This document shows, one piece after another, positions 3,837-52,559 of a DNA stretch of 64,000 nt. The notes below the pieces were generated by a model, which was not told the DNA's origin, ran no database searches, and saw only the letters and a program-made list of their open reading frames with translations. Source of the stretch: Eukaryota sp. TZLM1-RC (lineage: Eukaryota; Protista; Metamonada: BaSk clade); contig JAUPSS010000005.1 in assembly GCA_040285825.1 (NCBI GenBank), positions 1,488,001 to 1,552,000 on the forward strand. Direction: 5' to 3'. The stretch's first letter is position 1; every line of letters begins with the position of its first letter. Position numbers and translations under genes: made by a program.

Positions 3837-3916
3837 CTTGATTTGTTTTGTTTTGTTTTTAGTAGAAAATACTAAATTTATAACGATTTTAATAGCATAA
3901 AATAAATAAAAAAATG

Positions 3917-31018: not shown

Positions 31019-31713
31019 AGTGTCTACTTAATTGTTAGTGTATTGTAAATATTATTTATTAAGTCAATAAAATTTGTTGATTTTGGATGCTGAAATTAAC
31101 GTCAACTTATTCAATTTATAAAAACGACAAGGAATTGTTCGTGGTTCTTTACATTATAATTTTTTTCGTAATGATAACTGCAATAATAATGAACAAATTG
31201 AATCCAAGGGCAACACTTTAGCTTTTGTCGTTATAGAAAACTGTTATGATTGAAAACTCGAGATAATAGAATACCATATAAAGTTAAAGAAATACCTAAG
31301 TGTTTTGATCAAATTTCAACCGAAAAAGGATTTTTGAGATTGAGAGCTCAAAATATAATAAAAAACGAATAAACCAATGTGTTTGCATTAAAGTATATCA
31401 AATCTTCTTTAAATTTAATTCACTTCCCTCTGATATAGTGATTATTGTTTTTACACACATCAACTATTCAAATCAAATTCATTGTTTGTTTGCCAACATG
31501 CAGTTTTTATGGATCTGGAATCCAGTGATATTTGTGGGGTGCTTAATTAAGTATATGATCAAGACACACCAAGTCACATTTTTAACATAGTTAGAGTTAA
31601 TTTACTAAAAAATGCAATGAAAGTTTTGATGTACTTTCACAATATTGATTTATTCAATTGATTCCATCTCAATTTAAAACAAAATTTTCAATTTTCCGAA
31701 ATTCCACAGACAA

Positions 31714-32487
31714 ATGTCCACCTCTCAGTACCCCGAATGCTTCATTTGCGTCATTCATCATGGTTTACTCGTGGATCCTGTCGTCACACGCTGTGGGCAC
31801 TCATTTTGCCGAGCTTGTATTGAGCGTTGGATGGAGTACAGCGAGACCTGTCCCCATTGCAGGGAGGCTGTCTGTTATGGTACTCTTGTCTGCAACTTCG
31901 TGTTGAGAGAGGCGATGGAGGAAATTTTAGGGTTAAGTGGGATTGGCTACCACAAGGAATCAGAACGATCGACTCCATTGGTCTTTTGTGGGAATAGCGA
32001 TGAGATTGACCATCTGGGGTCAAGAATCAAAATCTTGAACAGCATTTTGGAACCCTTTGTTGCTTCTTTCTCTGCTGAAGAAATGTTCTTCAAAGGACTG
32101 AATTCCTACAAGCGACACCAATACCAAAAAGCTGTCTTCTGGTACGAGAAAGCTGCACATGCTGGTAATGTCCAAGCTATGGTTGATTTAGCTGACTGTT
32201 TTAGAGATGGTGAAGGTGTTCAACAAGATCTTCAACAAGCGGTTTTATGGTTACAGAAGAGTGCACAAGCTGGCCATTCTGGAGCTATGGTGAGTTTAGG
32301 TTACTGTTATAGTTTTGGTAAAGGTGTTGAGCAAAACCTTGAGCAAGCGTTTCTTTATTATCAAAAAGCTGCTCATTTGGGAAACAGGGATGCAATGTAT
32401 AATTTGAGTCTGGCTTATGAATTAGGCGAGGGTGTTGTACGAGATGAACAAATGGCATTTCAATGGTACAACAGATGCTATTTATGA
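31714..32487 (+). CDS. RING + Sel1 protein, copy 5
   Basis: As copy 1. Confidence 0.9.
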   Translation: MSTSQYPECFICVIHHGLLVDPVVTRCGHSFCRACIERWMEYSETCPHCREAVCYGTLVCNFVLREAMEEILGLSGIGYHKESERSTPLVFCGNSDEIDHLGSRIKILNSILEPFVASFSAEEMFFKGLNSYKRHQYQKAVFWYEKAAHAGNVQAMVDLADCFRDGEGVQQDLQQAVLWLQKSAQAGHSGAMVSLGYCYSFGKGVEQNLEQAFLYYQKAAHLGNRDAMYNLSLAYELGEGVVRDEQMAFQWYNRCYL

Positions 32488-33184
32488 AGTGTCTACTTAA
32501 TTGTTAGTGTATTGTAAATATTATTTATTAAGTCAATAAAATTTGTTGATTTTGGATGCTGAAAGTAACGTCAACTTATTCAATTTATAAAAACGACAAG
32601 GAATTGTTCGTGGTTCTTTACATTATAATTTTTTTCGTAATGATAACTGCAATAATAATGAACAAATTGAATCCAAGGGCAACACTTTAGCTTTTGTCGT
32701 TATAGAAAACTGTTATGATTGAAAAGTCGAGATAATAGAATACCATATAAAGTTAAAGAAATACCTAAGTGTTTTGATCAAATTTCAACCGAAAAAGGAT
32801 TTTTGAGATTGAGAGCTCAAAATATATAATAAAAAACGAATAAACCAATGTGTTTGCATTAAAGTATATCAAATCTTCTTTAAATTTAATTCACTTCCCT
32901 CTGATATAGTGATTATTGTTTTTACACACATCAACTATTCAAATCAAATTAATTGTTTGTTTGCCAACATGCAGTTTTTATGGATCTGGAATCCAGTGAT
33001 ATTTGTGGGGTGCTTAATTAAGTATATGATCAAGACACACCAAGTCACATTTTTAACATAGTTAGAGTTAATTTACTAAAAAATGCAATGAAAGTTTTGA
33101 TGTACTTTCACAATATTGATTTATTCAATTGATTCCATCTCAATTTAAAACAAAATTTTCAATTTTCCGAAATTCCACAGACAA

Positions 33185-33958
33185 ATGTCCACCTCTCAGT
33201 ACCCCGAATGCTTCATTTGCGTCATTCATCATGGGTTACTCGTGGATCCTGTCGTCACACGCTGTGGGCACTCATTTTGCCGAGCTTGTATTGAGCGTTG
33301 GATGGAGTATAGCGAGACCTGTCCCCATTGCAGGGAGGCTGTCTGTTATGGTACTCTTGTCTGCAACTTCGTGTTGAGAGAGGCGATGGAGGAAATTTTA
33401 GGGTTAAGTGGGATTGGCTACCACAAGGAATCAGAACGATCGACTCCATTGGTCTTTTGTGGGAATAGCGATGAGATTGACCATCTGGGGTCAAGAATCA
33501 AAATCTTGAACAGCATTTTGGAACCCTTTGTTGCTTCTTTCTCTGCTGAAGAAATGTTCTTCAAAGGACTGAATTCCTACAAGCGACACCAATACCAAAA
33601 AGCTGTCTTCTGGTACGAGAAAGCTGCACATGCTGGTTATGTCCAAGCTATGGTTGATTTAGCTGACTGTTTTAGAGATGGTGAAGGTGTTCAACAAGAT
33701 CTTCAACAAGCGGTTTTATGGTTACAGAAGAGTGCACAAGCTGGCCATTCTGGAGCTATGGTGAGTTTAGGTTACTGTTATAGTTTTGGTAAAGGTGTTG
33801 AGCAAAACCTTGAGCAAGCGTTTCTTTATTATCAAAGAGCTGCTCATTTGGGAAACAGGGATGCAATGTATAATTTGAGTCTGGCTTATGAATTAGGTGA
33901 GGGTGTTGTACGAGATGAACAAATGGCATTTCAATGGTACAACAGATGCTATTTATGA
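33185..33958 (+). CDS. RING + Sel1 protein, copy 6
   Basis: As copy 1. Confidence 0.9.
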   Translation: MSTSQYPECFICVIHHGLLVDPVVTRCGHSFCRACIERWMEYSETCPHCREAVCYGTLVCNFVLREAMEEILGLSGIGYHKESERSTPLVFCGNSDEIDHLGSRIKILNSILEPFVASFSAEEMFFKGLNSYKRHQYQKAVFWYEKAAHAGYVQAMVDLADCFRDGEGVQQDLQQAVLWLQKSAQAGHSGAMVSLGYCYSFGKGVEQNLEQAFLYYQRAAHLGNRDAMYNLSLAYELGEGVVRDEQMAFQWYNRCYL

Positions 33959-34289
33959 AGTGTCTACTTAATTGTTAGTATATTGTAAATATTATTTATT
34001 AAGTCAATAAAATTTGTTGATTTTGGATTCTGAAATTAACGTCAACTTATTCAATATATAAAAACTACAAGGAATTTTTCGTGGTTCTTTACATTATAAT
34101 TTTCTTCGTAATCGTTACTGCAATAATCATGAACAATTTGAATCCAAGGGCAACACTTTAGGTTTTGTCGTTATAGAAAACTGTTTAGATTGTGAAAATA
34201 AATATAATATTTATTATATCAATAAAATTGGTTGATGTAAATTCAAAAGGTTTAGACCAACACAAGCTTAAAAGAGATCAATCATGATG

Positions 34290-34765
34290 ATAATGAAAAT
34301 TTGGAGACAGGGAAAACCAGTGATTATTACACAGCCCAACAATTGCTTGACAAGGTTTTAGACCAACACAAGAAACAACACTACCAGGAAGCATTTCATT
34401 GGTTCAAGAAAGCTGCTGCTGGTGGAAGCTATGTTAGGGTTAGGTACTTGTTATCTTGAGGGTTTTGGGGTAGAAAAGGATGAGAAACGAGCTTTTCCTT
34501 GTTAGATAAAGCAGTCGAAGCAGGCAATGTGCAAGCAATGGCTGTTTGGGATATTTTTCCTTGTTTGGGATCATTCCATCGATGGAATGGGCATCGATGT
34601 AGTCCATCATGTAGCTTTTCATTGGTTCAAAAACGCCCCAGAATTAGGTGACCCTGATGAAATGTATAGCTTGGGCTTGAGTTATCAAGATGATGTGCGT
34701 AGAGATCTTCGTCAAGCTATTACTTGGTTCGAAGAGGCCAAGGATGCTGGCAATAATGGGGTTCG
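34290..34765 (+). pseudogene. Degenerate Sel1-repeat gene remnant
   Basis: YQEAFHWFKKAA, LGTCYLEGFGVEKDEKRAF, MYSLGLSYQD...DLRQAITWFEEA, spread over shifting frames. Confidence 0.7.
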
Positions 34766-35160: not shown

Positions 35161-35407
35161 CACAATGATATATATTGCATTTGAATAGTAACATTGGTGA
35201 TAAGATGGTTGCATAGAAAGTATCTACTTGACTAAATACGATGATAAGTCTAGTTTCCATATTTTGAATATAGCTTTCAAATGTTCAAGCAATAATTTTA
35301 CGATAAAGGTTTCGGAATAGCTGTAATAGTTTAGTGTTCCTTGTTTGATATCGACTAATTGTTTCTTTATGGGAATAATGAAGCATAAACAAAATAATTT
35401 ATACAAT

Positions 35408-36671
35408 CTAATTAACAACAACACTGGCACTTTGAGTTACAAAACGAACCCACTTTTGAATAGCAGTTCCATCAGCTGATTTAATAGACTTTAAACCAAT
35501 TCCACTAGCAGAAAAAGCAGGAATTTCATAATCAACACTCAAAGGACCTATTTGTTTCTTGGTATTTGGAGTAATACTTTTTTGGAATAATAAAGAAATT
35601 TTAACAGACTTTTCAAAAGTTCCAGTAATTTTCTCCAATGTCCACAAAACTTTACTTTCCTTCCTTACAAATTCCCCTAAATGCCCCATTGGTGAGGAAA
35701 AATTAAATGAAACAGATTCAGTTTGCTTTGGAACTGGCAGCGATAACACAACATTTTTAGCAGTATTTACCTCAGGAAAATCAGCACGAATACGCAAAGT
35801 AACGTCAATAGCATGAGAATCTTGCTCATCAATAAAACTAAATATTCTAAATGGCGACCTAAAACCAGAATCACGGAGATAATACCTAAATAATGAAACC
35901 TCCCCTTCAGGGGAATTGAACTTTATCATTGAATTAGATTTAAAATCAGAACTATTCACAAAAGAAGGAAACCAAATATTTTCTAATCTTCTTGGTACAT
36001 TTGAAAGTAAAAGAGAAAGCCTGGGAGAGCCTTGAATAAAAGAACGAACCTTTACAATTCCAGATAGTTCGCCAAAATGCAAAGAACCATTAGAACCAAA
36101 TGACATTGAGATTCGTTCCAAAATGTCAATAAACACGTCATTTCGTTTTTTTGAGCTGATAACTGATTGATTAGCTGCTGATGACGATACAGTTTTGTGA
36201 TTGAGAAGTGACGTGTCAACTTGCTGAACTACCGGGGTATTAAAGATATGCGGCTTTAACATGTCAGTAGAACAGTCTTGGAGAACACCTGTGTCTACAA
36301 TCTCATCCAAAATCTCATGTACAAGGGCAAAGTTGGTACGAACAGCTCGTTCAGAAAGATCCCCAATGTAATCTTTGATAATGGTGGCAGTGCGATAGAG
36401 AAGTTCAAGTAAGAGTGCAGGTGCGGATGAAGTTTTGGAAGCTATGGTAAATATGAGGTCATTGCGTTGAATGTGGGCAAAGTGGATGTCAGATAGACAA
36501 AAGATAGAAGGAACACTGGGGTTGTTGTTGAAATGACGGAAAAAGACGTTATGTATTGTGCTGGGCACATCTCCAGTGTCTATAATGAGGAGAAACAAGT
36601 CAGAACACACAGTCTTTGAGTACTATACAGTCTCCTCTCAGTGAAAGAACAAAGACTTGGCTAACAAACAT
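35408..36671 (-). CDS. AP4M1: AP-4 complex mu subunit (intact copy), intron 36580-36610
   Basis: Spliced start MFVSQVFVLSLRGDCIVLKDY/TGDV; VRTNFALVHEILDEIVDTG; RNDVFIDILERISMSFGSNG; C-terminal KWVRFVTQS. Confidence 0.85.
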
Positions 36672-37029
36672 TGGAGAGGGTATATGGTAGATGATTCGTG
36701 GTTTTGGGGATCTCCTTGACCAAGAATTTTAGTTTAATGAAAATCGTTTGAAATTTCAAACGATTTTGTAAAATTTCCAATAGAATTCCCTCAAGAGTTA
36801 AATTTAAATAATAATGTATGTGATTTACAGTTGCGATTATTTACTGATTATAATCGTCCAATTTACTTAACACCAGAATTAAAGAACTTGATGTTTAATA
36901 TGATGAAATTGGTTATGATCCACAATTATTGTCACTTTTTTCAAAATGATTTTAACCTCAAATGTTGAAATCAATTTGGGAAAAGTGACAATTTGTTCTC
37001 TTGGTTTGAAGATGATTTACATCCAAGAA

Positions 37030-37300: not shown

Positions 37301-37389
37301 AAACATGTCCAAGAAACATTTCATTAAACTATAATTCTTGGTCAAGGAGATCCCCAAAACCACGAATCATCTACCATATACCCTCTCCA

Positions 37390-38654
37390 ATGTTTGTTAG
37401 CCAAGTCTTTGTTCTTTCACTGAGAGGAGACTGTATAGTACTCAAAGACTGTGTGTTCTGACTTGTTTCTCCTCATTATAGACACTGGAGATGTGCCCAG
37501 CACAATACATAACGTCTTTTTCCGTCATTACAACAACAACCCCAGCGTTCCTTCTATCTTTTGTCTATCTGACATCCACTTTGCCCACATTCAACGCAAT
37601 GACCTCATATTTACCATAGCTTCCAAAACTTCATCCGCACCTGCACTCTTACTTGAACTTCTCTATCGCACTGCCACCATTATCAAAGATTACATTGGGG
37701 ATCTTTCTGAACGAGCTGTTCGTACCAACTTTGCCCTTGTACATGAGATTTTGGATGAGATTGTAGACACAGGTGTTCTCCAAGACTGTTCTACTGACAT
37801 GTTAAAGCCGCATATCTTTAATACCCCGGTAGTTCAGCAAGTTGACACGTCACTTCTCAATCACAAAACTGTATCGTCATCAGCAGCTAATCAATCAGTT
37901 ATCAGCTCAAAAAAACGAAATGACGTGTTTATTGACATTTTGGAACGAATCTCAATGTCATTTGGTTCTAATGGTTCTTTGCATTTTGGCGAACTATCTG
38001 GAATTGTAAAGGTTCGTTCTTTTATTCAAGGCTCTCCCAGGCTTTCTCTTTTACTTTCAAATGTACCAAGAAGATTAGAAAATATTTGGTTTCCTTCTTT
38101 TGTGAATAGTTCTGATTTTAAATCTAATTCAATGATAAAGTTCAATTCCCCTGAAGGCGAGGTTTCATTATTTAGGTATTATCTCCGTGATTCTGGTTTT
38201 AGGTCGCCATTTAGAATATTTAGTTTTATTGATGAGCAAGATTCTCATGCTATTGACGTTACTTTGCGTATTCGTGCTGATTTTCCTGAGGTAAATACTG
38301 CTAAAAATGTTGTGTTATCGCTGCCAGTTCCAAAGCAAACTGAATCTGTTTCATTTAATTTTTCCTCACCAATGGGGCATTTAGGGGAATTTGTAAGGAA
38401 GGAAAGTAAAGTTTTGTGGACATTGGAGAAAATTACTGGAACTTTTGAAAAGTCTGTTAAAATTTCTTTATTATTCCAAAAAAGTATTACTCCAAATACC
38501 AAGAAACAAATAGGTCCTTTGAGTGTTGATTATGAAATTCTGCTTTTTTTCTGCTAGTGGAATTGGTTTAAAGTCTATTAAATCAGCTGATGGAACTGCT
38601 ATTCAAAAGTGGGTTCGTTTTGTAACTCAAAGTGCCAGTGTTGTTGTTAATTAG
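37390..38654 (+). pseudogene. AP4M1: AP-4 mu second copy, intron 37451-37481, frameshifted near the C-terminus
   Basis: Near-identical inverted copy. GAAATTCCTGCTTTTTC becomes GAAATTCTGCTTTTTTTC (38534-38551), giving an early stop at 38557. May be an assembly error. Confidence 0.7.
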
Positions 38655-38739
38655 ATTGTATAAATTATTTGGTTTTTGTTTCATAAATTATTTTTTCAAA
38701 TATCTTTTTTTCCAGAAATTCTATTTGTTCAACAACGAA

Positions 38740-41162: not shown

Positions 41163-42449
41163 CTACAACTCATCGCGCTCTCCACTAACAAATGGTTCTA
41201 TCACTTTTATCCTGGTTGAAATTTTTTCCAAAACCTCTTCTTCACACCCACAAGGAGACCCCACCTCCATTGAATAAACGCATCGAGAATCTTCTCTTAT
41301 TCCATGAATAGAAGTGTTCTCGGCACATTTTAAGTCAACAGTTAGTGACCTATGTGGACCTCCCCAGCAGTAATCGCCATTTGTAAACGTCATCTGATTG
41401 GATAATTGATTGAAAGAGAATCTATCAAATTTACCCAACAAAACAGATTTTCCATTTTCAATCTGATGGGCACTTTTAAATAGAGAAAATTTATACTCAT
41501 ATGGAGAATCTTTGAACAATAATTCATTAAACTTCCCTTCTTTATCAAAAGTGGCTGATAACCAACACGTTTTCCCGTTCAAAACCTCAGAAACCTTAAT
41601 TAATTCATCCAAAATGGCCTCATGAGTTTCAATATTTTCTTTGATAAAAGTAAATTTTTTCTGCAGTAAAGACACTTCTTCTGAATGAGGTGAAGGTTTA
41701 ATAATCTTGACTTTTTTCAATAAATCAACAATTTTTGATTTAATAAGATCTGTGGATTGGGAAATTTTGTTGGTAATTGTGGATAATAGATCATTTTCTT
41801 TAAGTTGTTTTAATTCAAGTAATTGTTTTTCAAATAACTCCAATTGGCTGGAAATAAAATCAAATGAATCAACAAAAACAAGAGAATCCAAAGGTTCCTC
41901 CTCGATCAAATCCTCATCAATCAAAATCTGATTGCTGACGTCATCAACTTTCTGTTTAATTTCTTCCAAAAAAGCCTTTTGTTTTTGCAACACGAGCTTG
42001 TGCTCTTTCGCATCACCAACCATTTTCTTTCCCTCTTCCTCCATAATCTTCTTCACCCCAAGCGCCGTCTCTAAAAAGTACACCTCATCCTTCAAAGAGG
42101 CAAGTTCCTTCTTGGCTACATCTGTACATGTTTTATTGCACAATGGATCTTCATATTCGTCACTACAATCACAGCAGTCCTTAACACCATCGTTTACTTT
42201 GGAAAAAGATATGTACTTTGCTCCTAAGGGTTCCTGGGGACAACGGAATGATCGAGTGGGGGAATCAGAGATTCCGGCACATGCATTTGTGGTAGGTTCG
42301 TCCGATCCATCTGGACAGTCGCAGAAATTGTCATCGATGAATGAATAGGGGATGGTTAAAGAACCATCTGAACAGGTGAAGTGTGTTTTTAAAGCAAGGG
42401 CTAAGGAGAGAAGGAGAGAGAGGTAGAGGAATCTGTGTACAGAGGACAT
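41163..42449 (-). CDS. PRKCSH: Glucosidase II beta subunit
   Basis: Signal peptide, DDNFCDCPDGSDEP, VNDGVKDCCDCSDE, MRH domain (GDYCWGGPHRS...C), C-terminal RDEL. Confidence 0.93.
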   Translation of the reverse strand: MSSVHRFLYLSLLLSLALALKTHFTCSDGSLTIPYSFIDDNFCDCPDGSDEPTTNACAGISDSPTRSFRCPQEPLGAKYISFSKVNDGVKDCCDCSDEYEDPLCNKTCTDVAKKELASLKDEVYFLETALGVKKIMEEEGKKMVGDAKEHKLVLQKQKAFLEEIKQKVDDVSNQILIDEDLIEEEPLDSLVFVDSFDFISSQLELFEKQLLELKQLKENDLLSTITNKISQSTDLIKSKIVDLLKKVKIIKPSPHSEEVSLLQKKFTFIKENIETHEAILDELIKVSEVLNGKTCWLSATFDKEGKFNELLFKDSPYEYKFSLFKSAHQIENGKSVLLGKFDRFSFNQLSNQMTFTNGDYCWGGPHRSLTVDLKCAENTSIHGIREDSRCVYSMEVGSPCGCEEEVLEKISTRIKVIEPFVSGERDEL

Positions 42450-42482
42450 TGGCTAAGAACCTTTGATGAGTTGAATTAACTT

Positions 42483-42649
42483 CTGTGGTTTTCATTTGAA
42501 ATGCATACTTTCGTCAAGCATCATTCAAACTTATTCCAAGAACTTTCATTCTTGGTGAGATCATCCACAGACGTTCTAGAATCCTCGAATAATTGGCCAC
42601 CAATCTCAGTGAGCCCATTTCTCCTCTAAAACAATACGTAGCTTTGAAG
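42483..42649 (-). ncRNA. Candidate omegaRNA scaffold of Fanzor D
   Basis: Two GAAA-tetraloop hairpins (CCAAGAAT-GAAA-GTTCTTGG; TTTGAA..ATGC..AC-GAAA-GT..GCAT-TTCAAA). Internal CTGTGG is complementary to the terminal CCACAG. Confidence 0.7.
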
Positions 42650-44474
42650 CTAGTTTCTTTGTGGTCTCTGGAACGCTTCTGGTCTTGTTCCATAGTAGTG
42701 CTCACAAATTGCAATTTCTAGCTGATTTAGTGATGCAGAAATGTCTCTAGACCATACTTGATTACATTCCGGACAACTGAAATAGGCGTTGTGAACTTTA
42801 ACTTCACGATCAACTTCTCTATAGATCTTTTGGTGTAGCATCTTGCAGCAGTTCACCTTTGCAGATGTCATATATTCATCTCCGATCTTCACATTAGCAA
42901 ATGAACATTGTAACAACTTGAGAAACGCCTTACGTGGTGTTTTCACTTTTTGACATGATGGACCACCACCTCCGTTGCCAAACCACACCTTTGCTTCTCG
43001 ACCGTTTGCAAATTTTTCACTCTGTTGATAATTGAGCTGGATCTTTTCTGTTTTCTTATAAAGAAGTCAAATGTGTTTCTCCTCAATGCTTTTCGAGCTA
43101 TCAGATATAACTGCTGCTTAAGCAATGGTCGTCTTACGTTATTACCTTCATTGTCCTTATAGTCACCGATAGTTGATACTTCAAGCAGATAATTGTTCAA
43201 TTTCTGCACGTCATAAACATCTATTGATGGGTCAGTGAAGCGGTGTGGTTGATTTTTCGTTACTTTGGTGCCAAGAAGATATTGGAAACGGTCGGCCCTG
43301 AACGTGTTCCAATACTGGAACCACATAGATTTGAGTGGTTGGGGTCGATAGCCCAGAACACCATTTCCGTTTGGTCATCAGGTGCCTGCCACTCAGTAGC
43401 TTTTGGTTTCTGGCGAGGTCTCTGTTGTTCAACCTTGGCTTGCAAGGTATGTTTTCTATTCCAAGTGGTTTCGTAGTAGTCAAGTTCCCCTCTGGATCTC
43501 TTATTATTCAAGGCTTCTCCGGACAATCTCACTCGTGTTGCTTTGGGGTGCGGTTTGAAAGTTATACGGACACTATCACCATTAGAAGACATGGTGTAGT
43601 CATTAGCTTTTGTTTTAAAAAATAAATAAGGGTTTTGCAAAATTGTTTGTGATGTGTTTTTGGAGATAAAATGGTTGAGAACCCATGTGGAAAAGGGGAC
43701 AAAAGCAGGCTTCAAACTAGCGATGGGAGTGAGTCTATGTCGTCTAAAGGTATATGGAAAGGCTTGCTCCAGGTAGTTTTGGATTGTTAAGCTGCAACGA
43801 AAGATGTAGGTACTGTTCTCTTGATTAAGAGTCACTCTTCGAGAAGAAAGAAGAGTGTTGTACCTTTGAGGATCACCAACCAAAAAGTTAAACAGACTAA
43901 GAGCCATGGTATGGTGAGTGTTGAACCAAGGAAGAAGAGGTTCACGAAAGTTCGTGCTGTTGTGAAGAACAGAACCAGCATAAGTGAATGGTGCAGGGCA
44001 GTTATAACCTACCGCATACGAGCGGAAGAAGTTAAGCTTCCAAGACACAAGTCCATCAGCAAGAAGCTGCTGGTAGTTGCCTTGCAGCTGGCGGTACTTT
44101 GCATCCACTAGTTGTTGTAGAGGCCTACTAGTGGGTAGTGCATGATTACGACCTGTTCTTGACAAGAACAAGACAGCAAACGGCCATGATGTAGAGATTC
44201 GCTCGAGCTTCTCATACACATGGCCTTTGCCAGGTCTGTTAAATGGATGTCTGACTTTTGGCTTAGAGACCGCCACAAAGTCAAGACACTGGATCCAGAA
44301 TTGATGCTGAGTCAGGAAATGACTGTCTTCAGGGAAGCGCACAGCAAAAACTCTGGCCAACAAACTGCCGAGGTGAGCCATGGTGGTCACCTTGGTCAGC
44401 TGTCCATCAATGTAATCACACACTGGCCCCTCAAAGAACTGATGAAGGGAGCAGGCACGTGTCCATGTCTGCAT
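42650..44474 (-). CDS. Fanzor RNA-guided endonuclease D (~608 aa after two 1-nt homopolymer corrections)
   Basis: RuvC-I WAIDPNHSN, VWFGNG, RuvC-II GDEYMTSAK, zinc finger NCC...CPEC, RuvC-III WSRDISASLN, C-terminal GTRPEAF. Split over ORFs 43260-44474, 42943-43326 and 42650-42988. Confidence 0.88.
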
Positions 44475-46467
44475 AGTCCTTACTGAAAACGGAAGGTGCA
44501 GACAATCAAAAATGATTGATTTCTCAGTTTCAGTTACTTTTAAATTTGGTGTATTTTCAACTCCTTACATCCACAAAACAATGAAACATGCACAAACTGA
44601 TAAATAGACACATTTATAATAGATACTGGACATGCTTTAAGCATTTTCTTTCCTAAAAATAGTAAACTGATGCGAAATTTGACGAAATTGTTGTTAGTCA
44701 AAGCAGTTGTTCGTTTAATCAAGGGTGTTTGTAGATTCGAAAAATTCGTAAAGCCTCACAATTTAATTATCTTATTCAGTACAAACACGTTACCAAGGGA
44801 AGTCACAACACCCGTTTCTTTCTTCCCATTTCTTTCCTTCTTTGACGAAGAACCTTTTGCTCCTCGTTCAACTATATCTGAATTCGCCATGGATCTTTGT
44901 GGAACTGTTGGCTTTTCTATTATAGCGATTATAGGTTTCGTTTAGTGCGCTCACACATTGACTATAAAACATATAAAATAGACTAACAAAAGACAGTCTG
45001 TAGAGGCACTGCTGGCTATTCTTGAGTCTAAACTCGAGTCTATTGCAGATCGTCCATCCCAAGCTGTGCCAACAACTTCTGCTGTGTCACCCCTTTCAGC
45101 TGCACTTCTTGTTTTGAAACTAGACATCTGAGTACTTATTATTACCTTGTCTCTCTACTTCGCCCTCTTCACCCTCTTTCTACTCATCTTTCTTCCATAG
45201 AAGATGTTCCTCCTGTCTTCACTTGTATTACCATCAGTTATCAATATACACCCTTACACCTCTGGTATCGTTTGTTCACTCTCTACGAATCAACTCACTC
45301 CAATCTTATTCTACTCCAGTCTAACCTACTGCTAATATACATGAACTTCTAAAGTCTAATGAGCAGAAGATTTTTGAACTTAATGAACTCCAATTGAAAC
45401 TGCATTGAAGACACTTGTAATGTTAGTCAACATGGCTTCCTTGCAGAGATTGATTTTGACCAATTTCATATTAATGTAGTGTGATACGATGATAAGTCTG
45501 AAGACATCCACGCTGCTATGAGTGACACATATCCCCTTGAATTCAGGTTCGAAATCTTGAGAAAGCAGATTTTCTGGTTAATAACCTATTTCTGAACCTT
45601 CACTGTTTTGAATGTGCGTGGTTGATAATAATTTGATTCAATACTAGTGAATAATATTTATATAATAATATATATAATAATATATAATATTAGTGACGGT
45701 AGTATTATAATTGATTTAAATTGTAACTAAAAGTGCTAATACTCACCACATAACTAATAGTTCCAAAATAAAATATTATCGATTCATGTTTTATTATAGT
45801 GTTCGTTCAACTGTTGGTAAAAAGGAACCTTGTTGATAAAAACTAAAAAAGAATTAACTTGAAATTTGTCAAAATGTGAATTGCATTTTATTGGCTGATT
45901 CACAAGAGTGCCTTTTTTTTCTTTTTTTTGCGTCTTGGGTTTGTCAAACAGGGTTAACTTGTTGTTAGTCAAATGAAATTGTTTAGCTAGACACATAATG
46001 CAAATGAAGTGCACAACTCCCTGGAGATTTTGGACAAGTATAAAGCAGTATACATAGACCAACAGTGATTGTGTTAAACTATTATTTCTTCAACTTTTGG
46101 GTTATAAGAAATGAAGATATCATTTTTGTTTTGTAGGAGGAAATTGTTGCCTCAGATACACACCTTGGAATTTCAACTTTCTCCTGTTGAAATTCCAAAA
46201 TTGCAATGACTCTATGGCAAAAATAACCCCAATCAATTCAAGTCTGAAATTCTGTGTTGAAGTGGAATTACAGCACCGACCACTGGAATTTCTTAATCTT
46301 TTTTATTGAACTACAAAACTTAATAAAATTAAATCAGCACTAAAGGATCTAAATTCAATGAACCAAGATTTCCTCCACAAAACCTGACCTGATCAAACTT
46401 GACTCTTCATCATCCACCACCCATCTCAACACTAAACTCTTACTTGACATTTCTTTATTGTTAGCAC

Positions 46468-47874
46468 ATGTCAACTACACCAACCCGACCATTGCCTCTT
46501 CCAGATCAGTCAGCTTTTGACAATGCAGAGGACTTCTTCTTGAAGGAAGAACTATCGCCTCTTGTTCGAGATCCACCACCTCTCAAATCCCCTTGCCCCA
46601 GCGCTCGAGTCAATCGATCTCTTTACTCCCCTACGCCACGAGCTGTCCACGCTGAACCTGCCAACATTGTTTCTTTCTCTGAGTTCTCCTCCATTCAGCC
46701 CATCGGCCAAGGTTCGTTTGGGGAAGTTTTCAAAGCCAAATCTCCCATAGACGGTAAGTTCTACGCCATCAAGAAGCTTCACCCCTACAAAGGAATCAAG
46801 GATCGGGAGCGACGACTCCGTGAAATTCTAACTGTCAAGAGCCTTGGTAACCATCCTCATATCATTCAATACATTGATGGTTGGGAGGAGAGTGGGTGCT
46901 TGCACATTCAAACAGAACTGTGTCCTCTTGGTAATCTGGCTAATCTTTTACAGCAAAGCCCTCTTGAAGAGTTTACAATTTGGAATTTTTTATTGGACAT
47001 TACTTTAGGAATTAAACATTTGCATGATTCACACATACTCCATCTTGATATTAAACCAGGTAATATATTCATAACAAAGACCGAAAATGGTACTTTTGAG
47101 CTCAAACTGGGTGACTTTGGAATGGCGATAAACGAGCAGCAGGTGAAAAGTCAATGGACTTCTGGAGACGAAGGCGATGCTGCTTACGTGGCACCTGAAA
47201 TTTTGTCATATACTAGAACTTCCAAACGTTCAGTTGCCCGCCCTGCTGACTGTTTTTCCCTTGGATGTACGCTTTTCGAAATGTGCGCTCACCTCTCCCT
47301 CCCTCCCTCAGGTCCAATGTGGCAAATGTTGAGGAGTGGAGAAGTGGAGCTATCCCCCCATTTGGGAAAGCATTGGTATGGAAGGAGCGAAGGGTTGAGG
47401 TCATTGACGCAGAGCTTGTTGTACCCTGAACCAATAGCAAGGCCAACAGTTGATGATGTTTTGGAGATGGAAAAGATAAAGGAGTTGCTAGTTGAACGTT
47501 ATGATGATCCCTGTCCTTTTCCAAGAAGGGAAGGCTTACGTCACCAATCACATCATCATCGACACGTGGCATCACGAGGCAGTAGTGTTACAGATCTGTT
47601 TACTTGTTCTGTCGGCTCCAGTTTTTCATTATACGATCCTGCGCAAGATGACGAGTGGTTAATGTCATCAGAACCTACGAGAATGTCAAAAAAGTCAGTT
47701 GACGTCTTTGGAAAAAAGGAAAAACGACTATCAGAACTCAGACGACCCAGTTTTTTATCAATCAATTCTGATTGCCTTCCATTCAATTCAGAGGATTTCT
47801 GTGTTGAAATTCGAAATATTGATACACCGCCACCTTTATTGTTCGATAGTGAAGAAGATTCTGTTTTGCATTAG
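46468..47874 (+). CDS. Wee1/Myt1-family protein kinase
   Basis: IGQGSFGEVFK, YAIKK, HLDIKPGNIF, KLGDFG, EGDAAYVAPE, LPPSGPMWQMLRSG. Confidence 0.9.
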   Translation: MSTTPTRPLPLPDQSAFDNAEDFFLKEELSPLVRDPPPLKSPCPSARVNRSLYSPTPRAVHAEPANIVSFSEFSSIQPIGQGSFGEVFKAKSPIDGKFYAIKKLHPYKGIKDRERRLREILTVKSLGNHPHIIQYIDGWEESGCLHIQTELCPLGNLANLLQQSPLEEFTIWNFLLDITLGIKHLHDSHILHLDIKPGNIFITKTENGTFELKLGDFGMAINEQQVKSQWTSGDEGDAAYVAPEILSYTRTSKRSVARPADCFSLGCTLFEMCAHLSLPPSGPMWQMLRSGEVELSPHLGKHWYGRSEGLRSLTQSLLYPEPIARPTVDDVLEMEKIKELLVERYDDPCPFPRREGLRHQSHHHRHVASRGSSVTDLFTCSVGSSFSLYDPAQDDEWLMSSEPTRMSKKSVDVFGKKEKRLSELRRPSFLSINSDCLPFNSEDFCVEIRNIDTPPPLLFDSEEDSVLH

Positions 47875-48076
47875 TTTATTTCATATTTTTAATATGAATA
47901 CCTGTTTATTTCGATTCAATTGTTTTACAACAAGATCAGTATAATTTTATTTATTGTTTAAACAACAAATTGGGTTTTTGTTAATTTAAAAAGTTAGAAG
48001 AAAACACAAAATATTATACAAGTATTAATGAATAAATAACGTTTTTAAAACTAAATTCAAATATATTACAACTTCA

Positions 48077-48919
48077 TCATTTCTTCCTAAAAATTCGAGT
48101 ATTTTTTAAAAATTCCGCCAAGGAAACAAAACCACCGCCACTACGAACTAATACTCGTTCACTGGTTTTCGGAGAATTTCTCTTCACAATCAGATGAATT
48201 TTTCTATCAGACAGATAATAACCATCTTTGCGAGAAATTAATGGAAATTCAAGAGAATTCTCCTTGAAAGCAGTTGAAAGTCTTCGGATTTCCTGCCTTA
48301 TCACGTCATCATCTGATATCTCGTTATCATGAGAGTTAATCACGTCATCATTTTGATCTTGATTTTGATCTTCCCCCATTTGATTTCCCATCGTATCCTG
48401 TTCCACACCAAGCAGTTGACTGATAGTATCTGCACACCACGACACAACGTCACCAACACCCCCCAACTCTTTTCCTATCCTGCTCAACGTCTTCATGACG
48501 GCAGTATCATTGGTTGACTTAGTAAGCCAGGATTCCAAAGACTGAACTTGGGAGTGCAGACGAGAGAGGGTAGAGGAACAGTTGGTGAGGAAAGGGAGGG
48601 CTGTTTCGGCATTAACTCGATTAAGTTCATCACGAAACCTGGAGAGTTCAGAGACAGCAGCATCCAGTTGGTTAGAATAAGTACGTATTTCTTCATTTTT
48701 GGTGATTAGTTTTTCACGGAGAAGAGAAACATCGTCGAAAAGCTCGTCACAACGCAGACATTTGGGAGTTTGTGCAAGTTGAAGGGTTTGTTGACGATAG
48801 TGATCCCGTTCCTGAGCAAGAATTCGTAGCTGATCATAATTCTTTTGAAGTTCAAGGATATAGTACTGTTTCTCTTCTGTGAAGTTGATGCAACATTGAC
48901 ATGTACAAGTGAGTGGCAT
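48077..48919 (-). CDS. Coiled-coil protein with C-terminal GAS2/GAR-like domain
   Basis: Heptad-rich N-terminal half; DGYY...VLVRSGGGFVSLAEFL. Confidence 0.7.
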   Translation of the reverse strand: MPLTCTCQCCINFTEEKQYYILELQKNYDQLRILAQERDHYRQQTLQLAQTPKCLRCDELFDDVSLLREKLITKNEEIRTYSNQLDAAVSELSRFRDELNRVNAETALPFLTNCSSTLSRLHSQVQSLESWLTKSTNDTAVMKTLSRIGKELGGVGDVVSWCADTISQLLGVEQDTMGNQMGEDQNQDQNDDVINSHDNEISDDDVIRQEIRRLSTAFKENSLEFPLISRKDGYYLSDRKIHLIVKRNSPKTSERVLVRSGGGFVSLAEFLKNTRIFRKK

Positions 48920-48988
48920 TGATAGTGAAGAATGTGGCTGAGGATGCGTTATAAGATTCGAAAAATGAGAAATAAGTTGCTTATACTA

Positions 48989-49261
48989 CTGTGAATTTCA
49001 CTTATCATGCATTCCCCTGTGAAATTCACTCCTGTTTTCAACTTTCTCAATGTCTACTCACAGGCTGTAAGAGACATGTAGCATCATTTGACAAAGACAA
49101 TCATGATCTTCATCAATGGGCTACCTCACTTAAATACACCTACTGCATTCACAGAACAAAGCCTCGCGACTTGATGTATCTAAGTGGATCTACCAAATGC
49201 TACTAAGGTATTTGTAGATCGGTCTCAAAAGTTTTTGTTTCTGTATGCTCACGTTCCCTAT
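48989..49261 (-). ncRNA. Candidate omegaRNA scaffold of Fanzor E with duplicated terminal repeat
   Basis: Stems GATCTAC/CAAATGC...GTATTTG/TAGATC (49187-49220), GTAGCAT...ATGCTAC and ATGTCT...AGACAT. Internal CTGTGAAT (49147-49154) is complementary to the terminal ATTCACAG. Confidence 0.7.
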
Positions 49262-51223
49262 TCATCTCCTCAGCAGAGCATCTGGGCAAATGTATCTTTC
49301 CGGCCACAATTCCGCTTTCTTCTTAATTTGAATATTTTTTGCAGCGGAAATATCTCTGTCATATACTATTTGACACTCAGTACAAATACGCATCTGCCAT
49401 GAGCCTGCTTGAATATTCTCGGCCATGCAACAACTTGACATTTTGCTTGTATTAAATTCACTGGTTGACAAGTGCTTCACGTCCTTTTGATAACACAACC
49501 ATTTTCTGAAAGCCCTTGCTGATCCATATCGATTGACTTTTCGGCAATGAGAAGGGAAATTAGCAGAACCCACAGCAAGATAGAGTTTTTCAGGATGTCC
49601 AGCCAGACTTTGAAATTTGTTGAGACTCTCTCTGAACCGTCTCTCTTTTCGTCTGCGGTTATCAAATTTAATTATTTTCCATTTCTGGCGATTACTTTCC
49701 AAATACACTTTCCTCCTGACCAAATTCCAATGGTTCAAATATTGGTTGAAATTTTGAACGGAATATTGGTTGGGAGAGTGTTTACTGGGTGAAGGTTTTG
49801 TCCTGTACCTCCTGCCAGTTGGACAAGGAATAACTCCACATTGATTATCATTTAAGAAGTAACCACATAATCTTGATTGGCCAAGATCAACGCCGATAAG
49901 GGGCCTTTCAGGTAAAATTTCGACTGGATGTCTACGTCTTCGACGGGGCATTTTTTTAGTACCCTTCAACTGTGTTTCTCTGGTTTTGTTGGCATTAGGG
50001 TCACTTTTCATTTCATTTTTTGATCTTCGTTTCTTTTTCGGTGGTTCATCCAGCTCATCTGTGTTTTCTGAGTCATTATTTTTACCTTCAAAGGTCAAAA
50101 GCAGTTCATTACCATTAGTTTTCAATAAAATTTTGTTAAATCTATTTTTCAAACTTTTTTTCTGTTGATATTGAATTTTTGGTAAGGACATTGTTTGAAT
50201 ACTCGTTTCAGACATGTATTTTTGATAAACTTTGTTTTGGAAGATGATCCTTCAATAATTGGAAATTTTTTTCACAGAGTGGAAAATTTGTGAAGGTACC
50301 TCAATAAATTTAGAACCTTTATGAGAAGCTAAAGGTATTATTCTAAATTTCTTCCAGCAATGCATATGAGAAAAGAAAGTGAGTAAGTATTTTGAAATTT
50401 TAAGATTGAAGAGAAAAAGCTCACTAATTTCCTTTGATGAAAAAGTGATTTTTATCATGTGAGGACAGTAGGGAGGCAGTGGTAGGAAATATTTGAAAGA
50501 GATTCAAGATAAACCTACATGCATTCAATAAAAAAAATCTTTCTCTTGAATTATTCAAATTGAAATTGATGAGGTATTCAAGAACAGAATCAACTACTAC
50601 TTCCTCGGGTTGGGCTAGTAGTTCATCTGGCAAAAAGTGAAAGAATATTATTTGCAAAGACATTTGTTTTTATTCAGGGCTCTACAATGAGCACGAATAA
50701 AGTTTTTTGTCCAGGATTGACAAATTTTGGGTAAACATGTCTTAACGTTGGAGGCCAATTGACGAGCACGACAGGCAAGATAAGAAGAAAGCCCTTTTCT
50801 ATTGATAAAATTACAGTTCTGGGACTGCAGCCAATCATTGAGGAAAAGATTGAATGAATTTCTGTAAGGCACTAAAGAATTTTCCCACACAGAAACAAGA
50901 GGCCTGTCTTGTGGGCATTCAGGAAGAAATCCATTGTAAAAGATATGGAGTAATTGGCGTTGGCCTTTAGATGTGGAAGGCTTTGGAAAAGAACCAGTGG
51001 TGATGACGGTCATAAACAGATACCATACATCCTGTTCCACTAAAGCTCTTGATGCCAACGGAAAATTTAGAAGAAAAGATTGAAGTAATAAAGACGCTTC
51101 ATGACAAATCTCGGTGACCACAGGAAGGTCAGTCCGAATTTGTTGCACCGCTGCATGGGTCAGCAGCGAGTTAAGTGCACAAGACCGAGTGAATACACGT
51201 GACACAGAGTGGGTGTCTGTCAT
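49262..51223 (-). CDS. Fanzor RNA-guided endonuclease E (~652 aa after 4-5 homopolymer indel corrections; possibly a young pseudogene)
   Basis: N-terminus FTRSCALNSLL (cf. D WTRACSLHQFF); NLS-like PPKKKRR and PRRRRR; RuvC-I IGVDLG; AVGSANF; RuvC-II SEFNTSK; SCC...CTEC; RuvC-III YDRDISAAKNI. Confidence 0.85.
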
Positions 51224-51799
51224 GTAGTGAGAATAAAGAGCTCATCTATCAAATTTTACACTTGTCACCCATTTTCGACTTCTGGTTGCCTATTCTGGGA
51301 GGTTTTTAACCCTCAACTTGGTTTTGGGAGGTTTTCACTATTCCCACACTTTCCCACACTTTCCATTTACTTTGTAAGAATTCTCCAACTGAGTAGTTCA
51401 GCATCTCAGTTCATTTTATCCACGTCCTCCATCAATCTCAACAGGTTACCACTGTTTGACGTTTTGTGTTATTAGCCGATGTCTAAACTCAATTCTTTAC
51501 AAACCAAGGTGATTCAGCTTAAACACACAATCACTACTTATCAAAACTACTGCAAATCACATAATCTTCCTCTTCCACAAGTAAGTGATGTATTTTGCTT
51601 ATACTAAGATGAATAAACACAACACATTCAGCTAATGTGTGTGTTCAATTTAATTTCTACCACAGAACACAATATAAATGAGTGGGAAATTCATATCATG
51701 GAATGAATTGAAAGCACATGTTGTCACATCACTTGTTGTTAATGTCTGTTCAATTTGTTAATTTTTGGCAAAACTGTCTCATGAATTTCCAAGAGCAAT

Positions 51800-51871
51800 T
51801 CGGTCATAGTATAGTGGTGAGTATCCCCGCCTGTCACGCGGGAGGCCGCGGTTCGATTCCCCGTGACCGAG
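51800..51871 (+). tRNA. tRNA-Asp(GTC)
   Basis: Acceptor stem TCGGTCA/TGACCGA, anticodon arm CCCGC-CTGTCAC-GCGGG, GGTTCGATTCC T-loop, downstream T5 Pol III terminator. Confidence 0.95.
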
Positions 51872-52559
51872 AAACTTTTTAATATATTTCATCATCATAC
51901 GATTGGGTCCGCAAAAATACTATTACTATATAATGTTCCCACCAGTAGTCAACAGTAATTATTGCATTGTCGACAATGAATTAATGCAATCATAGCAATA
52001 ATTGGAGTAATTTCCGATAATGAAATAAGAAATAATATAGAGTTAAATAAAATGTTTAGAATTACTGTAATACATCTAGCTATTCGTTTTCAAAACTAAC
52101 TGTTGGTTGTTCATGTCGGAATGGGTCGGGCTATTTCCTTACAGAAAGTACACAAACCTTCATGATGAAAGTTGAACTTCAATAACAGCTCCATCTCCAA
52201 TTTTCAATGTCAAACCATGGCGAATAAAGTTTCAGAGCTCTAGTCCTTGAAAAAAGGACACGAGTTTCGACTAGAGAAACAGTAAGATGAGAAAACAGAT
52301 TTCCAAATTTGTTTGCATTTTAGCAATAATTACATTATTACAATTGTACCAATACAAATCGCAAAAATGATAACTCAAAAATAAAGTAATTGTAGAGCCA
52401 ACATTATAAACCATAAATTCATTTAAACTATATGTATTTGACAGAAGTTGACCATTTCATCTGCTCTATTCCAAATATTAAAATACAAATAGCAATTCTG
52501 AACTTTATTGAAAATAAATAGGGAAACGGATACTACTAATTTGATCTCTAATAGGCAAT

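Follow-up and report, generated by a model that had tools for sequence, protein, structure and literature searches.

The window, i.e., the whole stretch of 64,000 nucleotides analysed here, stems from Skoliomonas litria TZLM1-RC and contains two minus-strand Fanzor elements, D and E. Each lies directly upstream of a host reading frame on the same strand and is enclosed by a short direct repeat. The features are as follows, with the basis of the call in brackets.

41163-42449, minus strand: host glucosidase II beta-subunit gene, directly downstream of D, same strand
42473-42482, no strand: 10-bp target-site duplication (TSD) of D, 3'-side copy (exact repeat)
42483-45850, minus strand: Fanzor element D, 3368 bp, decayed D-type Fanzor1 copy (paralogue identity)
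42483-42494, minus strand: 3' terminus of D, TGAAAACCACAG (motif search, paralogue comparison)
42650-44474, minus strand: Fanzor1 coding region of D, three ORF pieces (ORFs, paralogue comparison)
45825-45850, minus strand: D-specific 5' extremity, 26 nt, absent from paralogues (paralogue comparison)
45851-45860, no strand: 10-bp TSD of D, 5'-side copy (exact repeat)
48077-48919, minus strand: host ORF of 280 aa without a clear domain, directly downstream of E, same strand
48977-48988, no strand: 12-bp TSD of E, 3'-side copy (exact repeat)
48989-51594, minus strand: Fanzor element E, 2606 bp, decayed member of the E-type family, which has a high copy number (paralogue identity)
48991-49029, minus strand: 3'-terminal hairpin of E, 11-bp stem, 17-nt loop (DNA fold -9.1 kcal/mol, z -4.35)
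49262-51223, minus strand: Fanzor coding region of E, two ORF pieces (ORFs, comparison with the E-type copy L011)
51356-51594, minus strand: 239-bp 5' segment of E, upstream of the family core (core start ~51355)
51595-51606, no strand: 12-bp TSD of E, 5'-side copy (exact repeat)

Both coding regions are frameshifted. Measured against intact 609-aa paralogues, that of D has lost 4 nt near 43229 and 1 nt near 43017, and that of E carries seven small indels compared with the intact 651-aa copy in L011. Single-sequence searches for a Fanzor identity returned nothing useful. A profile (A4) comprising the D-type family, its relatives and the E-type L011 protein gave E=5.5e-49 against SpuFz1 (8gkh, positions 15-585), 1.6e-45 against PpFz1 and 3.5e-38 against GtFz1; in total, three solved Fanzor1 structures (8gkh, 9cf0, 9cer) were matched by the D-family profile. 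In the A4 alignment, the RuvC triad (D377, E535, D579) and the zinc finger residues C545, C569 and C572 are invariant or nearly so, and Pfam TNB domain matches were found. On the strength of these profile matches, D and E are assigned to Fanzor1. The Fanzor ORFs are intronless. A conserved tail with a hairpin occupies the 3' end, where an overlap with the omegaRNA would be expected, and a search of Rfam gave no match for this tail. The hairpin of E stops 2 nt short of the element end, while the one preceding the 3' terminus of D is weak (z -0.85).

The repeat of D, GAATTAACTT, is located at 42473-42482 and 45851-45860, and that of E, TTGCTTATACTA, at 48977-48988 and 51595-51606. Both pairs are on the same strand and occur just twice in the 64-kb window, and in both the lower copy adjoins a plus-strand CTGTG, the reverse complement of the minus-strand CACAG. 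The window contains TGAAA-NN-CACAG at two sites, the ends of D and E only. This is in good agreement with the preliminary description, which had reported exact direct repeats right after CACAG and had taken them for TSDs. The competing explanation is that they are chance matches in A+T-rich DNA, as might be suspected from the fact that most paralogues have no such repeats and that 5' boundaries are not conserved. When anchors were placed at random in the window, flank words of at least 10 nt recurred 1.5-4.5 kb away in 1.2% of cases, and words of at least 12 nt in 0.2%; for anchored exact repeats of 10 bp and of 12 bp to arise jointly by chance, the probability is ~2e-5. In a census of 18 element ends from this genome, which probably holds more than 100 copies, four had an anchored repeat that was exact over 10 bp or more, against a local null of 1.55% (binomial P=1.5e-4). 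Moreover, the E repeat coincides with a boundary defined independently by reads, and a repeat in the paralogue L012 with the homology boundary of that copy. Chance is thus extremely improbable, and the repeats of D and E are genuine TSDs.

The boundary of E is seen in the strain's own reads. Contig record 8 of run X1 agrees with 51326-51596 except at 1 mismatch, breaks exactly at the predicted 5' boundary and continues with 781 divergent nucleotides; its depth is ~3x that of unique DNA. The 239-bp 5' segment of E is missing in six fetched E-family copies and is found elsewhere in the genome. Positions 51595-51596 are also common to the second copy in the reads, and the true TSD of E could be 10 bp long. 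No empty allele of D or E was recovered.

The two ends of the elements behave differently among paralogues. D shares 96-97% identity with L001 and L003-L006 over window positions 45824-42481, and E 89-98% with L007-L012 over 51355-48987. At eight D-type and eight E-type ends the likeness stops 0-2 nt past CACAG; these alignments show that both families truly end at CACAG on the 3' side, exact to the base, as had been proposed. Upstream, D begins 26 nt ahead of the shared sequence with a stretch that looks like templated filler, an imperfect copy of the adjoining T-rich ...CAACA motif. Compared with L010 and L011, which have 20 and 59 nt of private 5' sequence, respectively, L012 begins 27 nt later, and ~11 nt of an E-type tail stand at the 5' end of L004, the same tail abutting its relative L006. 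Further duplications anchored at CACAG were found in L010 (10 bp), in L011 with its intact 651-aa Fanzor (11 bp) and in a minus-strand unit of L010 (13 bp); L012 has a 12-bp duplication with 1 mismatch exactly at its homology boundary. The six duplications (10, 10, 11, 12, 12 and 13 bp) mostly belong to copies whose 5' ends are private or truncated, and the 5' junctions of these copies show microhomology or templated filler. Duplications are absent from the pairs with a common 5' end (L007 and L008, L004 and L006, L005 and L002a) and, despite private 5' ends, from L001, L003 and L009. Altogether, 4-6 of the 18 ends bear a duplication, and the majority of the copies are without a TSD.

The D and E families are therefore not defined by duplications: the majority of copies have none, and the 5' end varies between copies. 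The preliminary description had proposed an element type with CACAG and a TSD in every copy, and had reasoned that copies with other 5' boundaries or without repeats would reduce the matches to chance. CACAG was indeed kept in the other copies; 5' ends were not conserved and TSDs were not universal, and chance is still excluded by the statistics.

No terminal inverted repeat (TIR) above shuffled controls was found in D or E, and inspection of the ORFs of both elements revealed no transposase, which bears out the earlier observation. The mobilising enzyme must thus act in trans. Neither left-end inverted repeats nor 5'-3' complementarity exceeded shuffles in D, E and nine other copies, and no transposase was seen next to the elements at any of the 13 loci inspected. 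D and E each represent a multi-copy Fanzor1 family of S. litria, as dead copies without a transposase. A MULE transposase, named earlier as a possible source of the duplications, is unlikely in view of the missing TIRs, the ragged 5' ends and the TSDs of 10-13 bp: MULEs have long TIRs and ~9-bp TSDs whose length does not vary within a family, and Fanzor-bearing MuDR elements have TSDs of 9 bp (PMC3627910). Classification as non-autonomous MULE/MuDR elements is contradicted by the lack of a TIR and by duplications of 10, 11, 12 and 12 bp within the E family alone.

A related explanation regards the copies as broken classical TIR elements (CTGTGG...CCACAG with a 2-bp TA or AA duplication, Tc1/mariner-like as SPu-1) that were moved by a DDE or MULE transposase. 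In L005 and L002a the tail recurs in inverted orientation ahead of the D-type body, at one and the same position; this inverted tail matches the 3' end in 16 of 17 terminal nucleotides and has its own hairpin with a 9-bp stem; both copies are flanked by AA on both sides, and L010 by TA on both sides. A MULE transposase fragment is located in L002, and SpuFz1, which among solved relatives stands closest to the D-type family (E=5.5e-49), resides in SPu-1 of Spizellomyces punctatus, an element with TIRs and TA duplications (PMC3627910). SPu-1 resembles the elements here in having a single ORF and a length of about 2-3 kb; it has 33-bp TIRs and TA duplications, whereas D and E have no TIR and duplications of 10-12 bp. 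However, D, E and nine other copies are without a left-end inverted repeat, yet they are young, dispersed and often equipped with intact ORFs. Cut-and-paste transposition yields neither 5'-truncated copies at new sites nor TSDs of 10, 11, 12 and 13 bp in one family, and a TA insertion in L010 would require that the tandem duplicate was already present in the empty site. We consider this explanation quite unlikely.

The main rival is retroposition, in which Fanzor transcripts ending at or just past CACAG would be inserted at staggered nicks by target-primed reverse transcription (TPRT) through a non-LTR reverse transcriptase acting in trans. It predicts 5' truncation, 5' transduction, filler and TSDs of variable length, and the fixed 3' end, the variable or truncated 5' ends, the 10-13-bp TSDs and the microhomology or filler at 5' junctions are consistent with it, as is the absence of introns from the Fanzor ORFs. 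TPRT is also active in this genome: a poly(A)-ended insertion at 15951-17528 has an 11-bp TSD, and its empty site is kept at 1786-1796. The minus-strand unit of L010 begins exactly with the start codon of a COMM-domain ORF, as would fit an mRNA-derived copy if 5' UTRs are very short; by analogy with Giardia, very short 5' UTRs are assumed for this organism. The 3' side agrees less well. Although 5' truncation and variable TSDs are present as in retroposons, there is no poly(A), A-rich or microsatellite tail; the duplication follows CACAG directly in every case, and the tail of the one poly(A) retroelement available in the window does not resemble the Fanzor tails. Further points against TPRT are the missing TSD in over half of the copies and a gene for an MJ1316-domain protein lying antisense within the E-type unit. 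Retroposition is thus a serious but less probable alternative.

The antisense MJ1316-domain gene is carried by one E-type subfamily of about 20 copies. The MJ1316 domain stands for the recognition of RNA 2',3'-cyclic-phosphate ends.

The Fanzor might also mobilise itself, its own nuclease and omegaRNA end, perhaps together with the MJ1316-domain protein, making the break or processing the template without a dedicated transposase. This would be in line with the lack of a transposase at 13 loci, with the omegaRNA-like tail as the only conserved cis-sequence and with an RNA-end-recognition domain gene that travels with one E-type subfamily; Fanzors as the cause of non-canonical TSDs have been a matter of speculation (Craig 2022, 10.1101/2022.12.15.520654). 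On the other hand, the duplication spans guide positions 1-13, the guide of a donor copy matches its own old site only, and the genes of D and E are dead. In addition, the cuts of known TnpB/Cas12-type enzymes are generally located far from the TAM. Self-mobilisation is thus doubtful. Equally doubtful is a more general version, a transposase-free spread in which the CACAG-ending omegaRNA-like tail is the sole cis signal and 10-13-bp duplications arise, perhaps via an RNA whose processed 3' end is handled by the MJ1316 protein. Unrelated genes that acquire the tail would then be mobilised too, as the COMM-domain unit in L010 suggests.

The reading we favour, with a probability of roughly 0.55, is a one-ended, 3'-anchored copy-and-paste process by an enzyme supplied in trans, rolling-circle-like, with end joining at the 5' side giving rise to the TSD. 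Only the 3' terminus would be fixed in sequence, namely a short hairpin, the ATGCA...TGAAA-NN motif and CACAG. The 5' end would be the point where copying stopped or started, hence its variation from copy to copy. For private or truncated 5' ends, we infer that end joining at a staggered break subsequently closed the junction with the target, which would leave microhomology or a short templated filler together with a duplication of 10-13 bp; copies with the 5' end common to their subfamily would mostly remain without duplication. The machinery is most likely of the rolling-circle type (HUH/Helitron-like) rather than a MULE, because the same signature is known from CRe-1/2/3 and MCi-2 (PMC3627910). 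Points against a Helitron-like reading are the 3' end CACAG instead of CTRR, the lack of an asymmetric terminal inverted repeat and the weak hairpin of D. The absence of a duplication from L001, L003 and L009, in spite of their private 5' ends, likewise speaks against the favoured reading.

CRe-1/2/3 of Chlamydomonas reinhardtii are non-autonomous Helitron2-type Fanzor1 elements, often 5'-truncated, with TSDs of 7-19 bp (PMC3627910, Bao & Jurka 2013). Like the elements described here, they encode Fanzor1 and no transposase, their 3' ends are almost always intact while 5' truncation is frequent, and TSDs of variable length (7-19 versus 10-13 bp) occur on a fraction of the copies only. Copies ending at the consensus or shared 5' end have no TSD, a 3' hairpin is present, and additional sequence sometimes follows the 5' TSD. 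The conserved 3' end with heterogeneous 5' ends and the variable TSDs on a subset of copies are thus shared, with L001, L003 and L009 as exceptions. In contrast, the end CACAG is not Helitron-like, no Helitron with the same termini has so far come to light here, and the T-rich tetranucleotide rule is not clearly obeyed. Asymmetric terminal inverted repeats were not detected, and the 3' hairpin is strong in E only.

MCi-2 of Mucor circinelloides is an unclassified, TIR-less Fanzor1 element with 11-12-bp TSDs and variable 5' regions (PMC3627910). It resembles our elements in the lack of TIRs, the presence of TSDs and the 5'-variant subfamilies, with differing, "fuzzy" 5' regions on a nearly identical Fanzor-bearing 3' region. 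Its TSDs follow the pattern ATAATTNNNN(N), whereas the six duplications here have no sequence pattern in common, and MCi-2A holds a partial Crypton gene where one E-type subfamily has the MJ1316-domain ORF instead. A TIR-less Fanzor type, as proposed in the preliminary description, was therefore already on record. D and E are a new example of a known pattern, i.e., a fixed tail end, a ragged head and duplications on some copies, and not a new type, because Fanzor elements with this very pattern had been reported from a green alga and a fungus by 2013 (PMC3627910). Replitron-1 of Chlamydomonas, an HUH copy-and-paste element, likewise shows variable-length TSDs and a fuzzy end with parental flank sequence (Craig 2022/2023, 10.1101/2022.12.15.520654); unlike here, the fuzzy end is the right one, a Rep gene is present and a Fanzor is not. 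The bacterial TnpB-only elements of the IS200/IS605 group share the asymmetric ends, the hairpin near the right end, the absence of a transposase gene and a guide derived from the right flank. They insert next to a fixed TAM without a TSD, whereas duplications and no fixed upstream motif are found here; membership in this group is contradicted by the duplications and by four E-family copies without a constant upstream motif.

The tetranucleotides before the six 5' duplications are TTTC, ATCT, TTTT, ATAT, ATTA and TTAT, which are only loosely T-rich and not distinguishable from the background of a genome with 65% A+T. TTTC and ATCT had been put forward as TAM candidates; this does not agree with four nearly identical E-family copies that have ATCT, TTTT, ATAT and ATTA. 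These four differing tetranucleotides in one family suggest that insertion is not coupled to a TAM. If so, the guide RNA may not act in homing at these sites as textbooks describe, and each guide would begin with 10-13 nt that are nothing but duplicated target. TnpB-type enzymes generally need more guide match than 10-12 nt to cut. The self-targeting puzzle raised earlier is accordingly weak, as the filled allele keeps just 10-12 nt of guide match. The D and E boundaries and TAMs proposed so far need correcting ahead of biochemical work. Movement of transposase-less Fanzors in eukaryotes has been an open question since 2013, and Skoliomonas, with two young high-copy families, intact genes, precise 3' ends and duplications on a subset, is a good system for finding the one-ended mobility enzyme.

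Finally, the elements differ from CRe-1/2/3 in their host, here a metamonad, and in their position just upstream of same-strand start codons. The 3'-side TSD of D is located 24-33 nt 5' of the start codon of the glucosidase II beta gene (ATG at 42449), and that of E 57-68 nt 5' of the start codon of the ORF at 48077-48919 (ATG at 48919).

Two Fanzor elements on the minus strand of the window, D (42483..45850) and E (48989..51594), are each flanked by a direct repeat, which is exact and lies where the preliminary description had placed it:

42473 and 45851: direct repeat of D, GAATTAACTT, exact, 2 occurrences in 64 kb
48977 and 51595: direct repeat of E, TTGCTTATACTA, exact, 2 occurrences in 64 kb

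Neither word occurs anywhere else in the window, which consists of A+T-rich eukaryotic DNA. Its protein matches assign it to the metamonad flagellate Skoliomonas litria, strain TZLM1-RC (assembly GCA_040285825.1). At random anchors in the window, the flank word recurs 1.5-4.5 kb away with a length of at least 10 in 1.2% and of at least 12 in 0.2% of cases, and on these rates the chance of observing both repeats jointly is approximately 2e-5. In D and E alike, the lower copy of the repeat directly adjoins CTGTG, i.e., CACAG on the minus strand, and TGAAA-NN-CACAG is found at two places in the window, only at the ends of D and E. An empty allele was looked for by comparing 45750-51700 with the Logan contigs of four DNA runs under two organism labels; they contain no joint that skips E, but as they barely cover the unique flanks, this speaks neither for nor against such an allele.

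Paralogues from 12 loci of the same genome (L001-L012) confirm CACAG as a real, base-precise 3' end. Together with the window they provide 18 ends, eight D-type, eight E-type and two related tails, which resemble each other as far as CACAG and lose this similarity 0-2 nt beyond it. The first flank base is A in D-type and T in E-type ends. Approximately 30 terminal nucleotides are common to all tails and have the form ATGCA...TGAAA-NN-CACAG. The tail of E folds into a hairpin with an 11-bp stem ending 2 nt before the terminus (z -4.35), while the hairpin of the D tail is weak. A "repeat-spacer-repeat" arrangement of the E tail was rejected, since its two repeats pair with each other as the arms of a single hairpin. 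No known RNA families or ribozymes were found near the CACAG ends, the only hit being a tRNA-Asp(GTC) gene at 51799-51872 (+), approximately 200 bp beyond the 5' end of E. This proximity is probably a coincidence, because there are no tRNA genes near any other copy; targeting of tRNA genes was rejected, as none is present in any of the 12 loci.

Both elements carry minus-strand ORF pieces with a Cas12f/TnpB zinc-finger (TNB) domain, and show approximately 22% identity at the N-terminus. The family of D has 24 members in a 90% cluster, including intact 609-aa genes; that of E is larger, with 82 members in one cluster alone, and an intact 651-aa E-type gene is located in L011. Single-sequence searches against the PDB returned nothing informative, whereas a profile of the D-type family, its distant relatives and the E-type protein of L011 matched the solved Fanzor1 proteins SpuFz1 (E=5.5e-49, nearly full length), PpFz1 and GtFz1. 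With a conserved RuvC Asp-Glu-Asp triad and conserved zinc-finger cysteines as well, the D-type and E-type genes are true Fanzor1. Relative to intact copies, D itself has two frameshifting deletions and E seven small indels; both are dead. In agreement with the preliminary description, they contain neither a transposase nor terminal inverted repeats (TIRs) above shuffled controls, and no second gene was found in the 1.2-kb D-type leader. Their neighbours are ordinary host genes, namely glucosidase II beta, a protein kinase and a 280-aa ORF without a clear domain. Elsewhere in the window, six tandem 1471-bp units (25370-34320; 91-100% identical) each encode a 257-aa RING-finger and Sel1-repeat protein, and a 1.37-kb inverted duplication (35378-36742 and 37319-38684; 98-99% identical, arms 576 bp apart) spans an adaptor-complex mu-subunit gene.

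The 5' ends are ragged. The D-type core begins at window position 45824, 26 nt inside the predicted boundary of D. L001 and L005 agree over approximately 150 further bp, the 5' piece that L004 and L006 have in common is a different one, and L003 begins later. The E-type core begins at approximately 51355, 239 bp inside the predicted boundary of E, and is preceded by lineage-specific segments: those of L007 and L008 agree at 99.6%, a second partial copy present in L010 is similar to that of L009, and a 400-bp segment is common to L010, L011 and L012. Differing 5' boundaries had been named in advance as the sign of chance matches, and on the face of it they are what we find; the boundaries are nevertheless rescued by a read contig and by the private ends of L010-L012. 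The contig, 1052 nt from the strain's own DNA run and with a depth of about 3x that of unique DNA, matches window 51326-51596 with one mismatch and then diverges over 781 nt. Thus, the 5' segment of E also occurs elsewhere, embedded in longer sequence, and the copy in the window stops exactly where the duplication starts. In each of L010, L011 and L012, the duplication is located at a 5' end private to that copy; L012 begins 27 nt after L010 and L011, which have 20 and 59 private 5' nucleotides, respectively.

In their sequence, the 5' junctions look like products of end joining. The filler of L010 is made up of three 8-mers in tandem, a blend of duplication end and element start, that of L011 opens with an imperfect copy of its own duplication, and within the 26 nt of D the neighbouring T-rich ...CAACA motif recurs in imperfect form; L012 is joined via a 2-nt overlap. 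The 5' end of L004 carries approximately 11 nt of an E-type tail, the very tail that directly abuts its close relative L006, as would be expected if copying began slightly upstream of the parent. In L006, the D-type copy begins right after the last base of the E-type tail, both being stacked head to tail (2366-3758 and 3748-6991). Three pairs of copies have a common 5' end without a duplication, i.e., L007/L008, L004/L006 and L005/L002a (the latter a full D-type copy in L002).

Each of the 18 ends was scanned upstream for its own flank word. Anchored repeats were found in L010 (10 bp), in the intact copy of L011 (11 bp), in L012 (12 bp with one mismatch, exactly at its own homology boundary) and at a minus-strand unit with a D-like tail in L010 (13 bp, or, if counted from CACAG, 16 bp with one mismatch). 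They are absent at 11 ends (L001, L002a, L002b, L003-L006, L007-L009 and the E-type copy in L006) and likewise at a solo tail in L002. In the repeat-less copies, no approximate duplications (12-mers with at most 2 mismatches, 14-mers with at most 2 errors) occur at the boundaries, and a single match with one mismatch inside L006 was judged to be chance. Of the 18 ends, 4 have an exact anchored repeat of 10 bp or longer, compared with 1.55% under a local null (P=1.5e-4). The duplication phenomenon is real, but it concerns a minority of copies and does not define the families. The proposal that D and E define an element type by CACAG plus a target-site duplication (TSD) is not supported, given repeats at a minority of ends and ragged 5' ends.

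The best reading of these sequences would be a 3'-anchored, one-ended copy-and-paste process, driven in trans, whose 5' junction would be closed by end joining across a staggered break. Mobilisation by a MULE transposase, as had been suggested for D and E, is unlikely in view of missing TIRs, variable duplication length and ragged ends. The main rival is target-primed reverse transcription. The same 5' features are expected from it, and a poly(A)-ended insertion of approximately 1.58 kb in the window itself (15951-17528) has an 11-bp TSD and an empty site that is preserved; the Fanzor copies, however, have no A-rich tail, and most of them show no duplication. The poly(A) insertion, whose ORFs have no Pfam match, belongs to a large inverted duplication (1129-3836 vs 14537-18243): one arm contains it, the other the empty site at 1786-1796.

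The analogy with published elements and the terminal hairpin lead us to favour a rolling-circle (HUH) machinery for one-ended copy-and-paste. The Chlamydomonas elements CRe-1/2/3, non-autonomous Helitron2 Fanzor1 elements, have intact 3' ends and frequent 5' truncation, 7-19-bp TSDs on 10-70% of copies but none on copies with the consensus 5' end, and sometimes extra sequence after the 5' TSD, which Bao & Jurka 2013 read as one-ended rolling-circle transposition (PMC3627910). Mucor MCi-2, which lacks TIRs, carries 11-12-bp TSDs and comprises subfamilies that differ in their 5' regions, with "fuzzy" 5' ends, on a common 3' region, was left unclassified (PMC3627910). Variable TSDs and fuzzy ends derived from parental flank were also reported by Craig for de novo insertions of an HUH element (10.1101/2022.12.15.520654). 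With the Fanzor1 elements of Bao & Jurka 2013, the D and E families share the precise 3' end, the ragged 5' ends and TSDs on some copies, whereas the Helitron-specific CTRR end and asymmetric inverted repeats were not found in them. As this signature was already described in 2013, the proposed type represents a known, still unexplained one-ended Fanzor1 pattern, now seen in a metamonad. Yoon et al. 2023 (PMC10711439) showed that the guide-RNA scaffold incorporates short, fixed TSDs, which cannot apply to variable duplications of 10-13 bp.

TTTC and ATCT had been put forward as TAM candidates. The tetranucleotides preceding the 5' duplications are ATCT, TTTT, ATAT and ATTA in four nearly identical E-family copies and TTTC in D. 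No single TAM can account for all of these; the TAM must be very loose, unless insertion is uncoupled from it. A self-targeting puzzle, also raised there, is not apparent to us, because the filled allele retains only 10-12 nt of guide match, and in TnpB-type enzymes a match of this length should not allow cleavage.

At eleven of the 18 Fanzor 3' ends, an ORF beginning with ATG follows downstream on the same strand at a distance of 14-80 nt (33 nt for D, 69 nt for E), which places the target duplications in host gene leaders. The solo D-like tail remnant in L002 (12100-12254) ends 73 nt upstream of the ATG of an ERCC3-type helicase, and another 298 bp upstream of it lies the end of the full D-type copy L002a, an arrangement that suggests repeated insertion at one gene start.

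A search for TIRs and ATIRs was negative except for L005, where an inverted tail copy equals the 3' end at 16 of 17 terminal nucleotides. Such copies lie upstream in L005 and L002a and, in another arrangement, in L010. The inverted Fanzor-type tails (CTGTGGTTyTCAC...), upstream of D-/E-type copies, are:

L005 3383-3501: inverted tail
L002 9639-9757: inverted tail
L010 2940-3060: inverted tail

They contain repeated TTTCACCAAC motifs and a hairpin with a 9-bp stem. The fragment has identical boundaries in L005 and L002a, two different loci, and may be either a canonical left end or a co-mobilised piece of a different insertion.

The minus-strand unit of L010 (2922-3548, 595 bp) extends from the ATG of a 116-aa COMM-domain ORF to the D-like tail ...GTGAAAACCACAG, and is flanked by the 13-bp repeat TTTTAGATAAAGT. 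Its target word is found a third time where the neighbouring E-type copy ends (6366-6375). This represents either two insertions of opposite orientation at one site, or a host-type gene mobilised by a Fanzor tail.

Opposite to the Fanzor strand, one E-type subfamily carries a small ORF for an MJ1316 "RNA cyclic group end recognition" domain (PF04457, 45 bits):

L011 6001-6492 (+): MJ1316-domain ORF
L012 6001-6396 (+): MJ1316-domain ORF
L010 3650-3940 (-): MJ1316-domain ORF

The gene is unmentioned in the Fanzor papers compared here. The ORF begins approximately 25-75 nt from the E family core, inside the duplication-bounded unit, and is multi-copy, with one 17-member cluster and others.
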